Of a stretch of 64,000 nucleotides of DNA, positions 32,631 through 39,900 are shown one piece after another. Under the pieces are notes generated by a model, which saw only the letters and a list, made by a program, of their open reading frames with translations, was not told where the DNA came from and did no database searches. Location: positions 4,092,130-4,156,129 of the forward strand of contig CAJINV010000006.1 of NCBI GenBank assembly GCA_905178155.1, in the 5' to 3' direction. The stretch is from Amoebophrya sp. A120 (taxonomy: Eukaryota > Protista > Dinoflagellata). Every line of letters begins with the position of its first letter. The first letter of the stretch is position 1. A program made the position numbers and the translations under genes.

Positions 32631-33905
32631 TTTTTCATGTGGACAACGACAAGCAATAAGACGCGGAAAAATAAAAAATTGAAGTTATTGTATATTTTGC
32701 GTCAAACGTGGAGTACTATATATTTTGTGTTGAGTACTCGCTTGTCGTAGTGGGTTTTCCTAGAGAAGATGACGTAGTATCCGATTCCAAGTTGATGCGA
32801 AGAATTCTGTTTTTATTTACATTTACTCCCCCCATAATAACACTTTTTCATGATAGATTAAGATTTTTAAATCAACGTGGCGGAACAAATAGATTGGAGA
32901 AAGCTTGAGAAGATGTAGTTGCTTGCGTACTATCAGAATAGTACCATTAACAGGACCTGATCAATGATCATGGAGTTATCACATCATCAACCGACAGGTG
33001 AGTGAAGATCTGGTGAGAGCAGCTGCTTCCGCCTTGACAAAGACATCAGTCAAGCTTGTCTACAGTGCCACCTCCAGGAGCCGCACGACGACAGACATGG
33101 CATCGACAGATGAATTTTTACCGTCTGCTCTACAACCGATACAGTGGCGAAGAAACCGACTAGACGTAGTTCTTGAAAGCGGCACTCTATGACACATGCG
33201 CCCAGAAGTACCGGCAAAACCGCTTGAGAGCTGTTTTCCCTTTCACTTCCCCCTCCTAGCCTAAACCGATACCTCGGTCCAGGCACGTGCCTCGATTTTA
33301 CTGTTCTCCCGGACCTCGGCAAGCCTCGGCTTCAGGCCGGGTAGAGTCTCTCCGGTTGTCGTTAGTGTATATAGAGCTGTAAAGACAAGGCAGAAACAAC
33401 TTTCGATCATTTATTCTGCCAAAAATGTCTCCTACCGATCAAGAGATTGTTGGGATTCGTTTTGATTCCTAGTACGCAAATTGCTCATACACGGTGTTTC
33501 TTTTTCATGTCGAGTTGAAAAAAAGAATGTAGAATCAAAAGAAGGCCGTGTTGCTACGTTCGCGCCATCCGTCCCCGGTAGATGACTCCTGAAAGCAAGT
33601 GCTCGGGTCTCCATGAAAGAACAAGTGAAACGGCAAATAGGAAGAAGAATGGAAAGTAAGATATGAAAGTGGAAAACCTAAACTGAACAGAAAAAAAACG
33701 TGAAAAAAAGCGTAGCGTTTAAACAATCGATGACGAACCATGCTCGCAAGACGTCCAACAAGAACTACCTTATGCACAAGTGCTGCTTTCGACATGTTGA
33801 TGATAAGGATGGCACTAGAGATATTGTAATTTTAAAGACATGATTGGCACATGTGATTTATGTCTGATATTATTTCGTCCTCCCGCTTCTACTACCAATG
33901 GCCCA

Positions 33906-36900
33906 TCATGTAACTCTATCAAGTGCAAAAGTGTCTGGGTCTGGAAGATTGCCAGGTTTGTCATGCATATTTTTTTTTTTTTTTTTATTGGCTCGCAAAT
34001 TTTTCAGTTTCAGTTCAGTTTCAGTGGAGCGCCCCACCGGTCGAACACTTCTGATGGTGAACGAGGACCTGGGATTTGCGGCTTCGCGCCGCGACGACTT
34101 GATGGGGGTCCCGCACCCACCCTCCGTTTCCAAAAATGCAGCTTGTGCGTGAATGCTGCAAAACCTCCGACACCGCGGCACTAAAAAGGAGCAAGCTCCT
34201 TATTCACCATACACAAACCCAAAGAAGGAAATCATCGGGAAGAGATTTTGTCGACCACAATCAATGACACCAATGGCAACTACAACCCGAAGTAGGGGAG
34301 GGGTAGCTACTCCCGCACAACGCGCGAGATTCGTTTTCTACGTGTCGAGCCGGTAGCAGCGGCACACGTCCGATAAAGCTTTTTCCACGTCGACGAAGAG
34401 CTTGCTTTTTTTTTGCTGAATCGGAAAACCCTAAGCCCGTAAACCCATCTAATTACAACGGGAGGAAGCAGCCCCGGTCTTTTCACGAAGTTCGTAAAAC
34501 GGTCAAAAATGATTAAGCTAGTGCGCTACGCTACTGACTGTGTGCACGCTTCAGAAAACTTAAGCCCACACAGGTCCGCATTTAGCTACCGCCCGCCCTG
34601 AATGAGGCACGTCCTAACCCCGGTAGCAGCGAGGCAGATCTTGTTTTTTGAAAATTACACCGGGCGTTTGCAGAGTGGCGATAGCCGCAGATGCAAGCCT
34701 GCGGCTGTTAAGACGGTTGTAAAAAACTAGCGTACTTGTTTTTGCAAAGCTAATAGCACCCCCCAAGCAACAATCCGCTGGCTAGGCGGAAAAAAAAAGA
34801 GAAGCCCCTGCGAGGATGCGGGGTCCGCGGAACGCCTAGCGCTACAAGACGTGGATCAAGCAAGACTAAGTGCGAAGGCCACAAGACTGTAAAAGGGTAG
34901 AGACCTACATATACGTGGGACAACACCGGGCACAGGGAAGATCTAATTTTTCAAAGGCGAAGGAGCGCACGAATTTGCGATCTAGCTCCTTGGACAAAAC
35001 GAACGAAGAGCGGCAAAGACAAAGTGCTGAATAACGACTACAAGGCGGCAGGAAACATACAAAGCATACATAGCAGCAGCAAGCAAATCGGATTCACATT
35101 GCTGTGCACCGGCAGAAACTTCAATCACAACGAAACCCAGCCCCTCAGCCGCGAGGCCTTAAACTTATGCGAGGCCCAGCATATAAATTCATCATTTTTT
35201 TTAAGCTAGGAGCCGGCGTGCGTTACTTACTTACTTTTCATCATTCACTATTTAATTTTTTGCGCGAGCGGGTGCGATCTCTGAAATGTGAAGAGTGTAG
35301 CACAATTCACATACCAGGTTACGCGGGTATACGGCATTTTTTCCCGATTTGTACCTTTTCGGCTCTCGTCCTCTGGTCCTGCACTTCGTTGTCGATTCCT
35401 GTTTAGTTCCCTCACCCACTCTGCTGGCAAGACAGAAAAAAAAAACGTAGCCCCTGTCAGATTAATTAAGCAGGAAGAAGCCCACACAAAAAATTCCCTC
35501 ATCTACCTAGGGGCGACTAGGCAGATGGGGTGCGCCGAAGCAGGAAGGGGATGTTTCTAGTTGCAATGAGTTTACTCGGGAAAAGCATGAGGGTATTTTG
35601 GCGGGGTCCGCTAAAAATATCGCAAAAGCGGCAATTGCAATAAAATCAGCTCTACTTCTACTCGACGGCAAGCTAGTAAGGGGCACAGCATAGACTAGAA
35701 AAACTACTGGATCTTTCACGATACGGATCCCGCCCCGCAATGCGTGGGTCCTTTTGCTTGTACGATACGGATCTTCATGATCTTTCTCTTTCTTTATAGG
35801 TCAGCATTGCAACAGGGGCCACTCTCCCCTGTGCATGCTACCTTTTTATCTATCAGTGCTCCCCAACTTACATCCCGCCGGGTGAGGCGATTTGTATTGC
35901 TAGATTCCACCCAACTTGACTACGGGGTCGTGGGGACGTTTTTGCTTAGGATATGCGCTCTGTCATCTTCACCCCCACCGCAACAGGAATCCTCGACAAT
36001 GTCCTGGACGATTTGCTGTTGTTGTTTCTCCACCTGCTGCCGCGCAGCGGCCGCCGATGAAGCAGCAGCTGCAACTTGAAGGGTCGTTGCAGCTGGTGTG
36101 CCCGCTTCTACGTGCTGGTCCGCAACTACGTCTTCTTGAAATGCTGATGCTGCGCCTCCAGGAGAGGCAACATGATCCTCGTCATGATCTTCCATGATCT
36201 TGTTTACAGGAATAACTTCTTCTTGCACGAACTTCTGGGCAACTGGTGTCCTTCCTTTACTGTGAAGAGCAGCATGTTGACCCCCGGCACCGCCTCCACC
36301 CGTAGTCAAGCTGGTGATGGCAATCTTCCGCCTCTTGGTCGCACTTTGTCCTTCTCGCTTCTCCTTGTTGCGGCTTTTCTGTGCCGTGAAAGACAGGGCG
36401 TTCGCGAAGATTGTGATTTTGCCATGGTCTTCTTGGCCGTTGATATTAATACAACTACTTCCTAGAAATAGAAAGCGACAGTAGAAAGAACAGCCTGAAA
36501 AAGACAATACCAAGAAGGTCAACATCTTTTCCAACAAATTGAAGTTTTTAATACTCGCTCCCCGCCGCGCGGCCAGGTTCATGACCAACAAGTCCGGCGG
36601 GAAACGAAGAAAGAAGAATTTCTTGTGGACAAACAGCGACATCAATTTGTTCTGATTTTTCGAGGGGTCGTGGTAAGAACAACCTTAACCTTTCGGGAAC
36701 AAGATGGCGCTTGAGCCAAAATGGTTTGTCATGCATATTTTGCACAAGTAATCTGTGATGCTAGGTCATGCATTACAAGTAATGCATGACCTAGCACCGC
36801 AGATTTTTAAAGGGCCTTCTGATGCGTATTCCGAATGAGAAACGCCCGCTCCGCGTAGCACAAACTGAACTCCTGTTGCTGGTCATGCAATACAGATTTT

Positions 36901-39900
36901 TTTTACCTTCCAATCACAAGTTGCAACGTTCCAGACCCAGACATTTGTGCATTTGGTAAACTCGACGGAGAGCTCTCGCCGCGCCACTTTCCCCCTTTGC
37001 ACCGGGGTACGCGGCACCGGGGTACGCGGCACCGGGGTACGCGGCACCGGGGTACGCGGCACCGGGGTACGCGGCACCGGGCGGGCCCCCCTTGTTTCCT
37101 TTCGGCCCAGCATGGGGACCTCCTCCTCCTGGGCTAGTACTAGCGCTCTTCCCCCAGGCGGCCGCTGGTGCGCTCGGGGAGGTCGGACGGCCCGCTTTGT
37201 TCCACGAACCGCTTTGTGGCGCAGCCGCAGCCCCCTTGCTGCTCCAATGGCCATACGAGCCGCCGCCCTTTCGCGGGCCCGCCCACGAGGAGCCTTTTCC
37301 CGCCTGCGACCAGGACGACTGCGCCCAGCCTCCGCCGGCATATCGTAAGGAAAAATCCCCCCTCCCCATACTGAACAGGTACGCTTACGGAGATTTGTGT
37401 TGCTGATTTGAGGGCACAAATCGCATTTGTCTTGCAAGAAGGCAACTCCACAGGTTCCGCCGCATTATGCAGGCGGTTTATCATGCTGTTGGGCCTACAG
37501 CACGGACGTTTTTCATGCTAAGCGACTAGGCCAAAGCCTCTCTACTCTGGCTTGCTATGGGTCTGCAGTCCTCTCCAGCAAGACAAAGCTGATTTGTGTA
37601 CGCAAATCCAGCATCAGAAGCATCGTTTTGATATGGGGAGGGGGGATTTTTTCTTTTGATACGGCACGGCCAGACTTCACGTACGATCCCCCGAAGAAGG
37701 CGAGCACGACCACGACGATCACGAGCACCGCCACCCACCACGCGTTGTCCTCGTCCACGTAGACGGTTCCGTCGTCAGTGGCTGCTGGTGCAACCACCGC
37801 CGGTTCCGTGGTGGTGCTCGTCGTGGACGACGACGTCGATGCCGGGTTCGCGCTCTCGACTTCCCGCGGTGGAGCCACCCGAGTCGGGAGGGAGGTCACG
37901 CTCGCCGCCGCGACCTCGGTATTGCGAAAGGTGTTACTGCTGTCCGCGGCAAACGCGTCGCTTAAAGCCTCCGCCACGCCGGCGGCAGTTAACTGATTCT
38001 CGAAGCGCTCCAAGGCCGCTTCCAACTCTGCCGTCGAGGAAGCCACTCCGTCCTCAAGGTACAGGCCGTACGACGAAATGCGCACTGCGTAGGACGACGA
38101 CGCACTGGCCGCAGAAAGCCCACGATCTGCGTGGAGCAGGTTCCTCGATCGGCTGCGCGTCCGCGACGAATCGGACGCCGGAAATGTTTGAACCACCTCG
38201 GACTGGCTGCCCGTGATCTTGACCAAGTTGGCTTGCTGCATCAGGAACGCCGTTGGAACGCCGGCGTCAGTAAGCCACGGCACCACGACCTCCGGCTGTT
38301 TGTGCAGGGTGCGAACCCCGTTCTCAACGAGCCGGAAAAACGTTGCTGCGGTGGCCTCGTTGGTGCCGACTTCGTCCATGAGGGTCGCGAATCTCTCTGG
38401 AGACAAAGTAGATGACATATGCATTGCAAAGATCCCTGGATGTCTGGAAACTTGTGACGCAAGGAAGGGAATAGTAAGCTCACCACAATGCGCTGCCAGG
38501 CATGACAAGCTTTTTCATGCAGCTTCTGAGTTGCGCATTCCGCACGAGAAACGGCGTCTTTGCATGACAGGGACGAGGAGATCTTCGCGGCCATGCAATA
38601 CAGAGCTCAGAGCCATGCCAGACTAGCACGACAAATCTCGCGATCTCCCAGAAGACCCAGACATCTTTGCAGTTGATATGACAGGGCGACATACAAGTTC
38701 TGCATCCGTGCGCGCAGATCCTCACTGGCTCCCTCTTCGGCCGTGACGCAGCAATGCTCGGCAGAGTCGCAAGCACTGCCGTCCGCGGGACACAACTTCC
38801 ACTGCGCGAACCCCCGGATTTTTATACCGGCTCCCGCACTACTCTCTGCAGCTTCCCGGCAAGCTTCCCGGACAGAGGAGTCCGCGTCTGCCTCTTCGCA
38901 CGTCGACTGGCAGCACTCTGCTTTGGTGCACGCTTCGGCATCTGCACACATTTGTGAGCCGAGAAGAGCGGCCTGCGTAGGGCAACCGTCATGGAACCCG
39001 CTACCGCAGCTGCCGATGAGCTGGCAGCAAGTGGCCGCGTCAGCAGCGACTGTGCAACTCGTACCGGCGCAGCGTGCGGAGGCATCCGGTGTCAAGGCCT
39101 TGCCAACTGGACAACTCAGCTGGCCGCTGGCGCCGCCAAATGCCGCAGCGCACAGCTGTTTTGGGGAACAGGCTGGGCTGTCGCTTTCCGCACCGATCAG
39201 AACGAAGTTTGGATGGCACTCACGGCACCCAGAAAGGCCGTCTCCCTTGCAAATCTCGCCGCTTGACGCACCGGTGACAAGCGGATCTCCATTCGTGCAG
39301 GTGCACACATTGGGGTAGCACTTCTTTTGCTGCCCTTCCAGAGAGTGCTCCCCGGTCGCACACTGAACCGCCGGAGGGGCATACACTTCGATTTCGTCAA
39401 CATAACGGATCGTGCGGAGCTTAGCCGGATTTGTTTCGAGGACGCCATCAGTATCCTTGGTCTCCTGTTCCTCGGCCTCCTTTTGCGTAACGCCGGGGAA
39501 CTCCACGATTACGTAGTTTGCTTCCTTTCCCTGGTTGTGATGCAATGCAAATACCCCTTTTTCAGGTCCCGGTAGGCTGTCCGAGTTTGTCATGCTCATG
39601 CCAAATCTGAATCGTACCGCATCAAAAGGTGCCCACTTCCTACCACTCAACAGGTAAACTTCTCATACGGAGTGGGCGTTGAGATAAGAAGCTCTTTCAA
39701 AATTTCTGATGCTTCTGGGTGCACTGAATAATGCCAACTTTGTACAATATATATCGTAAAGGTAAAGAACCACGAGACGCGTGACAAGTCTTCCAGTCTT
39801 CCAGGCGAACAAGATTATTTGCACTGGATAGCAGTCGACGTCGACATAAAACATTTCCCGGCTGCACAGCCACCATGCGGCTCCATATGCCTTGAACGTT

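Follow-up and report, generated by a model that had tools for sequence, protein, structure and literature searches.

The window analysed here, G000:C6:4092130-4156129, is a stretch of 64,000 nucleotides from Amoebophrya sp. A120, a dinoflagellate whose 115.5 Mb genome carries introner elements with inverted repeats and 3-5-nt direct repeats, and whose transcripts bear a truncated dinoflagellate spliced leader (DinoSL) (Farhat et al., 2021; PMC7789003). Between positions 33912 and 36963 of the window lies an introner, an intron-forming transposon, which is interrupted by an insertion that begins with a relic of the spliced leader (SL) and ends in poly(A). Behind the SL relic come an exon of another gene, the start of another introner and a retroposon of a family that we call R, itself interrupted by a repeat module, M3. 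All genomic counts refer to the 115,520,608 bp that were searched. The features of the locus, in order of position, are these.

33912-33916: low-coordinate copy of the aactc 5-bp target duplication of the host introner (read directly; the joint from 33911 to 36959 has a 5-nt ambiguity)
33917-33952: terminal inverted repeat (TIR) of the host introner, the arm adjoining the poly(A) of the retroposon (36 nt, 83% complementary to 36923-36958)
33955-33973, minus strand: 3′ copy of the 19-bp target-site duplication (TSD), 19/19 identical to 36723-36741; contains the target motif TGCATGACAA (motif match)
33974-33986, minus strand: poly(A), the 13 A outside the TSD (full run 17 A, 33970-33986; read directly)
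33987-34000, minus strand: 3′ tail of R, variant ATTTGCGAGCCAAT (5 genomic copies against 0 for the control; alignable with the common tail ...GCGAATGGGGCCCAATC)
34004-35158, minus strand: module M3, a repeat within the R tail region (97-99% identical to C2:4858170-4859323 and C1:1683767-1684459)
35179-35234, minus strand: conserved 3′ block of R (TAAGTAACGCAC...GATGAATTTATATGC), in at least 15 separate copies at 88-98% identity and kept across subfamilies (alignment A2)
35235-35888, minus strand: body of R with full-length 5′ end (GCCTCACCCGGCGGGATGTAAG...), 99% identical to C2:11385600-11386246, 95% to C3:5988754-5989401 and 82% to C5:5295833-5296540
35889-35953, minus strand: first 65 nt of the introner of the putative source gene, unspliced, starting TATCCTAAGC... 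and ending in the target-like AGCAATACAAATC (at least 38 genomic copies, 84-91%)
35954-36709, minus strand: exon 1 of the putative source gene, 5′ untranslated region and open reading frame (ORF) from the ATG at 36642 (sole other match 87%, C14:681477-682273)
36710-36724, minus strand: DinoSL relic, 3′ 15 nt, with 36723-36724 common to the TSD (read directly; genomic 15-mer count)
36723-36741, minus strand: 5′ copy of the 19-bp TSD, identical to 33955-33973
36923-36958: second TIR of the host introner (inverted-repeat comparison with 33917-33952)
36959-36963: high-coordinate copy of the aactc 5-bp target duplication of the host introner (read directly)

The anatomy given in a preliminary description of this stretch holds on direct reading. 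The SL 15-mer, CCATTTTGGCTCAAG, runs from 36724 to 36710 and the pure run of 17 A from 33986 to 33970, both on the minus strand; the exact 19-bp TSD is GGTTTGTCATGCATATTTT, overlapped by the last 4 A of the poly(A) run; and the two halves of the introner keep both their TIRs and the aactc duplication. The 2-nt microhomology at the SL junction is genuine, because the final CC of the TSD on the minus strand doubles as the first two bases of the SL relic. These features are beyond chance: the SL 15-mer occurs 73 times in 115.5 Mb, against 0 for its reversed control, and for the string A8, 0-5 nt, GCATKACAA the window gives one occurrence where 0.00 were expected. The insertion junctions are not bridged by any contig of the DNA run, since short-read contigs break in repeats, and DNA depth is 28-36 over the unique part of the insert and 31-35 over the flanking unique exons. 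The proposal that an SL-capped, polyadenylated RNA was copied into the introner through target-primed reverse transcription (TPRT) is sustained by the 17-A run and the 19-bp TSD, and since the TSD is exact and the A-run pure, the insertion is recent, as had also been proposed. Two parts of that earlier picture have to be given up. The insert had been taken for a simple mRNA retrocopy, whereas only 36709-35954 (756 of ~2,720 nt) is derived from an exon, the rest being the start of an introner and a retroposon; and the introner had been seen as a chance 'safe harbour', whereas the same motif has been used by about 50 independent insertions of the R family.

Together with the explanation of the whole insert set out below, we think it probable that R is a non-autonomous family of poly(A) retroposons with a full length of ~700 nt; mosaic longer forms exist. 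The genome holds at least 52 copies, 47 of them with the common tail GGGGCCYAATS+A7, that is GGGGCC(C/T)AAT(C/G)+A7 (0 matches for the control), and five with the ATTTGCGAGCCAAT variant. The notion that this variant was foreign to R was rejected, as it aligns with the common tail. Standalone copies at C2:11385600, C3:5988754 and C5:5295833 each have poly(A) and a TSD of their own and lie in introners, the TSD at C2:11385600 being AAAATG(T/C)GCATGACAAACC. Full-length copies begin at a common 5′ end, (CCC)CTCCCCGGGGGGGATATAAATTCGG or its variant CCCGGCGGGATATAAGTTGGGG, and the 5′ end of the R body in the window aligns with the 5′ ends of such independent copies. Lengths range from ~14 nt (L013), ~40 nt (L014) and 50 nt (L081) up to 2.7 kb; at C25:186392 and C6:2246823, R is cut down to ~40 nt and ~14 nt, respectively, inside introners and with 16-nt TSDs. 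TSDs of 12-18 nt were found for 35 copies of between 50 nt and 2.7 kb, and the introners that bear R belong to at least four families. Poly(A) is followed directly by a TSD whose length falls within the ~7-20 bp of non-LTR-type TPRT insertions, and 5′ truncation varies around a shared 3′ end. This spread of TSDs and lengths indicates independent, variably 5′-truncated TPRT events. The spread of a single R insertion at the DNA level was rejected, since the copies differ in truncation point, TSD and introner family. Four long 'elements' returned by the TSD finder (L040, L066, L067 and L082) are probably false, motifs of neighbouring introners having been paired, and were left unused.

Neither the insert in the window nor any R copy examined contains an ORF for a reverse transcriptase (RT) or an endonuclease, which is why we regard the family as non-autonomous; the ORFs that neighbour R copies are host exons, for example of a phosphodiesterase (PDEase) and an exportin-7-like protein. 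R is not a classical short interspersed element either, in that it has no 5′ head of tRNA, 7SL, 5S or small nuclear RNA (snRNA) type with an internal RNA polymerase III (Pol III) promoter: a scan of 33800-37100 against Rfam yielded a single snoRNA-like match, below threshold, and nothing resembling a Pol III or snRNA head. Subfamilies with unrelated 5′ parts all keep the 3′ ~130 nt of R (alignment A2), which suggests that the 3′ end is recognised. RNAalifold applied to this end in 15 copies gave 14 pairs and no compensatory change, and thus no sign of a structured recognition element.

The insertions of R share a target. When 50 copies were oriented on their tails and the 14 nt after the poly(A) were searched, with the density in the introner-rich window as background, TGC[AG]T[GTC]ACA directly followed R in 38 (0.22 expected, P = 4e-79), and a looser form of the motif fitted 47. 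Independent insertions are thus concentrated at one motif and in one orientation. The consensus of 35 rebuilt empty sites is gt.at.GcAAAt.TGCATGACAAaTCTgg, after which come at least four kinds of introner end, among them TTCCAGACCCAGAC...GATA, GGGGTGGGGACGTTTTTACTCAGGATA and GATATGGGGAGGGGG...TTTTC. The exact empty motif GCAAAYNTGCATKACAA is found 1,930 times in the genome (control 0). In the window the 10-mer TGCAT(G/T)ACAA occurs 39 times against 0.29 expected, about 130-fold, and only the site studied here is occupied. A search anchored on the motif (A10, 0-4 nt, TGCATKACAA) gave 90 matches, spread over about 45 loci (control 0); about 18 of the loci have no R tail, so other families may share the target. 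With a sharply defined target of 17 nt and ~1,900 empty copies, the specificity of the endonuclease is directly testable. In introners, the 10-mer TGCAT(G/T)ACAA also marks subterminal regions on either strand, and it may serve the introners themselves as a transposase-binding repeat.

The 2,720 nt between SL and poly(A) have no second full copy in the genome, and separate loci match separate segments. Our explanation, which we hold to be probable, is that R, being target-specific, copied into the introner a longer RNA that had been read through from a host gene, in other words that the insert arose by 5′ transduction. R would integrate by TPRT at GCAAA(T/C)|N-TGCAT(G/T)ACAA, a motif found just inside one TIR in several introner families. 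The source would be a paralog of the orphan gene at C14:681477-682273 with a sense-oriented R within its introner, and a transcript from the promoter of that gene would be trans-spliced to the SL and would end at the poly(A) of R. Such an RNA would retain exon 1 plus the introner's first 65 nt, a piece that could not be spliced because the 3′ end of the introner is missing from the RNA. The R machinery would then recognise the 3′ end of R and insert a copy of the entire RNA at the usual motif within the introner at 33917-36958, with the cDNA ending 7-9 nt short of the cap and being joined via the CC microhomology.

We infer the read-through origin chiefly from the junctions. At 35889/35888 the target-like ...GGAATCTAGCAATACAAATC of the source introner lies upstream and the full-length 5′ end of R downstream, and alignment A1 matches this junction to those at the 5′ ends of independent R insertions, whilst the C14 site is unoccupied. 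Exon 1, introner start and R are therefore ordered as in a gene whose introner had received a sense R, and the empty site at C14 lends the model indirect support. The expectation that a parent gene and its SL addition site would be found was borne out in part. Whether the genome was searched with the entire insert or just with exon 1, no identical parent emerged from the assembly, only the 87% paralog on C14, but in that paralog ...cccccAG directly precedes the homologous first base of the exon, and its sequence and position mark it as the trans-splice acceptor, exactly at the SL site. The exon/introner junction of the C14 paralog is identical, its empty introner continuing for ~290 nt to ...GTGGGGACGTTTTTACTCAGGATA with the TSD gcgca; the introner piece in the insert (35953-35889) begins TATCCTAAGCAAAAACGTCCCCAC... 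and the exon-1 ORF runs on into it as far as a stop at 35920-35922. We read exon 1 as part of a fast-evolving orphan coding gene, because all seven of its indels relative to the C14 paralog are multiples of three; substitutions are spread evenly over the codon positions (26/23/22), and the ORF has no Pfam match.

A second SL-capped copy, at C25:210804-212320, has the same architecture. Within a 15-nt TSD it carries 21 nt of the SL, exons 1-3 of the gene at C1:4613724-4615335 (99.35% identity, two introners spliced out), part of an introner, R and poly(A). The 21-nt SL is placed at the AG acceptor of the C1 parent gene, so that SL remnants stand at a genuine acceptor both here and, judged by the C14 paralog, in the window. 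The 216 nt of introner 5′ part that are retained start exactly at the introner terminus and are followed by a 5′-truncated R at a target-like motif and then by poly(A). The source predicted for this copy would have an introner in exon 3 of the C1:4613724 gene, following ...GAGATCGAGA. The two introners of the C1 parent gene itself (L088, C1:4612914-4616835, minus strand) measure 277 and 279 nt, belong to two families and have the 5-bp repeats TCGCC and AGCTG; both are precisely absent from the C25 retrocopy, which speaks for splicing at their ends.

Several observations weigh against 5′ transduction by R, or limit it. A source locus with the transduced flank directly upstream was found for neither SL-capped copy: exon 1 followed by introner and R is not in the assembly, where the best match of exon 1 is 87%, the DNA depth over exon 1 of the window copy is that of a single copy, and the C1 parent, at 99.35%, has no introner at the position of the C25 junction. 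Both predicted sources are thus lost, polymorphic or unassembled; loss would be plausible, as a conjecture, if sense copies of R truncate host transcripts. M3 (1.15 kb) matches free-standing M3 copies at 97-99% identity, which have other tails and of which one lies outside introners; fragments of M3 also recur at the same spot of R tails between short direct repeats. For this part of the insert, a template switch by the RT is therefore no less likely than descent from a source copy. An autonomous partner with the same target was not identified in the coordinate cross-match described below, the target specificity has been seen in one genome only, and the sequencing run X3 (same organism label), from which the splicing of the enlarged introner is read below, is only guessed to be RNA.

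Template switching could also be taken to account for the whole insert, as a one-event chimera in which the RT passed from R RNA to M3 RNA, back to R and on to an unrelated SL-capped pre-mRNA, so that no such source ever existed in the genome. The pieces of the insert do have very different best matches (87%, 99% and 97-99%), the assembly offers no colinear source locus for either SL-capped copy, M3 fragments recur in R tails between short repeats such as TATATG...ATATGC, and deletion variants are bounded by TGAAAA repeats. Three precise coincidences would not be expected from random jumps, however. The exon/introner junction at 35953/35954 is genomic, being common to the C14 paralog; the full-length 5′ end of R comes directly after a target-like motif, as in independent insertions; and in the C25 copy R is 5′-truncated at a target-like motif in the retained introner, whose junction with the exon falls exactly at the introner terminus. 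We therefore consider this alternative unlikely for the insert as a whole, whilst the M3 part may still be so explained. Other R copies (L073 and L026/L062) have short 3′ fragments of M3 in the same position. A free-standing M3 element (L016:5135-6690, minus strand) has the tail GGAACTTACAGGATCC, 24 A and the A/T-rich flank AATAATAA on both sides; as it lies outside introners, M3 is mobilised without the introner motif as well. L016 (C2:4853000-4862500) shares 1,241 bp at 99.4% and a further 224 bp with L017 (C1:1680000-1689500), and in the C1 copy 1.2 kb are missing precisely where a single N stands (L017:3773), which reflects a segmental duplication plus a deletion, or else a gap in the assembly.

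That the insert is instead an ordinary processed host mRNA, reverse-transcribed by a non-specific long interspersed element (LINE) and landed by chance in a tolerant introner, we hold to be very improbable. Such an event would leave an SL relic, poly(A) and a long TSD, the A-rich start of the TSD fits an L1-like nick, and SL-relic retrogenes are well known in dinoflagellates (PMC5585692). Yet the insert is not colinear with a mature, fully spliced mRNA of an identifiable parent: next to its 756 exon-derived nt stand 65 nt of unspliced introner and 1.9 kb of a retroposon with copies of its own, no parent exceeds 87% identity, and the identical target motif recurs in 38-47 of 50 family members. 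We give equally little credence to an origin at the DNA level, by transposition of the insert-bearing introner as a unit, or to a mis-join of repeats in the assembly, for although introners are very numerous, some of those with an R look alike (C2:5122689 and C4:10712932, for instance) and the short-read contigs end at both junctions, the insert sits between the 19-bp TSD copies inside the introner, and this TSD corresponds to the motif that empty introners carry uninterrupted, the other copies of R are unlike in the three respects named above, DNA depth over the unique region equals that of the flanks, and a mis-join would not yield an exact TSD beside an SL and poly(A).

Integration of R by TPRT calls for enzymes, and the suggestion that LINE-type RTs would be found in this genome proved correct. 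It contains 106 RVT_1 and 32 APE (PF03372) matches, and at least 14 loci have an APE and an RVT_1 match together in a single long open frame, mostly of 1,245-1,481 aa, so that L1-like ORF2s that look intact are present. No RT partner for R was identified, and when RT, APE and junction coordinates were cross-matched by eye no RT lay within 3.2 kb upstream of R tails. The sole RT near an R-type junction, at C1:518468, is 4.2 kb from C1:514218, a weak association with a chance of ~0.14 by our own estimate. A sequence-specific endonuclease would presumably be supplied in trans by a LINE. From the poly(A), the length of the TSD and its A-rich 5′ edge one would expect a nick of APE type, predicted at ATTT^GC on the bottom strand of the target GCAAATCTGCATGACAA.

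SL relics also occur in other settings in this genome. In three cases a relic lies 2-6.5 kb upstream of an RVT_1 match on the same strand, in open frames of 1,306-2,121 aa: C5:5697877(+) with C5:5700009-5700740(+), C1:4723984(+) with C1:4730492(+), and C1:5840453(+) with C1:5846143(+). These pairs may be copies of retroelements that have kept a spliced leader. Pieces of 75-95 nt that resemble the R body (78-80%) are present at C13:1968314-1968409(+) and C4:10014823-10014901(+), ~400-500 nt downstream of the SL relics at C13:1967911 and C4:10014310, and part of R may perhaps be derived from, or have been acquired by, an SL-capped transcript. SL 15-mers stand back-to-back or 22-29 nt apart at C1:5840453-5840482(+), C3:6453581/6453610(+) and C14:388183/388205(-), a pattern that would be expected from repeated retroposition and renewed trans-splicing.

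Target-specific retroposons in DNA transposons and SL-relic retrogenes are both known; what differs here is the introner as target and the carriage of an SL with host exons. Tx1 inserts into the piggyBac-type Tx1D of Xenopus, and SINEU, mobilised by Tx1-Mar, into Mariner-N4_AMi of crocodilians, with 5′ extensions of some SINEU copies arising from co-transcription with their flanks (Kojima, 2015; PMC4494074). R resembles Tx1-Mar/SINEU in that non-autonomous copies make independent, 5′-truncated insertions at a defined position and in a fixed orientation within a multicopy DNA transposon, and in that some copies have 5′ extensions that would have been co-transcribed from flanking sequence. Unlike those pairs, its target is an introner, so that each insertion falls within a host-gene intron that can be spliced out, its host is a syndinean dinoflagellate, and its 5′ extensions carry a trans-spliced leader and host exons; unlike SINEU, it showed no Pol III or snRNA head in Rfam. 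R is seen here in non-autonomous copies, and the likeness to Tx1-Mar/SINEU is one of behaviour.

DinoSL-relic retrogenes of dinoflagellates were reportedly described by Slamovits and Keeling in 2008. They are also the subject of later work (Song et al., 2017; PMC5585692). Like these retrogenes, the insert has a DNA-encoded remnant of the 22-nt SL at the 5′ end of a retroposed RNA, and this genome is enriched in the SL 15-mer, back-to-back copies included. The RNA behind the insert, unlike a mature mRNA, was truncated, partly unspliced and fused to a retroposon, and it was inserted at a specific motif with an intact TSD and poly(A), which are rarely documented for dinoflagellate retrogenes. In 5′ transduction by human L1 and SVA, transcription from an upstream host promoter leads to flanking sequence, spliced exons included, being inserted ahead of the element within one TSD. 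The insert likewise has a host flank with exons ahead of the element within one TSD; in contrast to L1 and SVA, the flank starts with a trans-spliced leader and ends in part of an intron-forming transposon, and the source loci of the SL-capped copies were not found in the assembly. Among site-specific elements, R2 occupies 28S rDNA, Utopia and Keno U2, and NeSL, SLACS and CZAR the SL genes. Site-specific non-LTR (long terminal repeat) elements of multicopy genes have been documented (PMC4640811). Like them, R confines its insertions to abundant, dispensable sequence. Elements of the R2/NeSL type are mostly of the restriction-like endonuclease type, with small or no TSDs and often without poly(A), whereas R has 12-19-bp TSDs and poly(A), which is more like APE-type integration, and its target is a mobile element rather than an RNA gene.

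Full-text literature searches that combined introners with site-specific or non-LTR terms returned no description of introner-targeting retroposons. Introners are the best-supported current source of new introns, and Amoebophrya A120 is among their richest hosts. Gozashti et al. (2025; PMC12130899) stated that A120 introners are 'attributed to' non-LTR and LTR retrotransposons and reported elements that have TIRs yet show retroelement homology; nested insertions such as those of R are a possible explanation. We tentatively propose, as a picture that falls a little short of being likely, a LINE-driven retroposon system that lives almost only inside introners, with a conserved motif near the introner ends as landing pad, and repeatedly moves SL-capped host exons into the introns of further genes by way of premature 3′-end formation in sense-oriented copies: a parasite of a parasite, a form of exon shuffling specific to trans-splicing, and a likely cause of the 'hybrid' introners of A120. 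The SL-capped copies offer a route by which 5′ exons may move between genes in a trans-splicing eukaryote, and their SL relics are a rare datable record of the reverse transcription of incompletely spliced, prematurely ended host transcripts.

For the gene that received the insert, the question is whether its enlarged intron is still removed. The element at 33912-36963 has the TIRs, the short TSD and the high copy number of an introner (thousands of first-look genomic candidates for its family), and its removal at the ends is read from run X3. The earlier claim that an intron of ~3 kb must be taken out agrees with a 624-nt X3 contig that joins 33911 to 36959 with the expected 5-nt ambiguity; X3 depth is ~53 in the flanking sequence and zero across the insert's unique part. 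The enlarged introner thus appears to be precisely spliced out; if X3 were DNA, the contig would represent an allele without the introner. The introner measures 274 nt without the insert and 3,047 nt with it, and since the insert landed in an introner, the host gene appears able to remove the intron even at that length. Introners in this way form a niche for a second layer of mobile DNA, whose insertions are hidden from selection by splicing. Raw RNA reads of runs X9 and X10 place 1-2 reads on the stretch.

The host gene is an orphan whose ORFs have no Pfam match, and the lengths of these ORFs suggest a minus-strand orientation. Read by eye, its frame, ending ...RALRRV, meets a stop two codons past the 33911/36959 junction. 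In the last coding exon of the host gene, positions 36999-37081 hold five exact tandem 15-nt units (GCACCGGGGTACGCG, plus strand), which encode PGAAY repeats on the minus strand.

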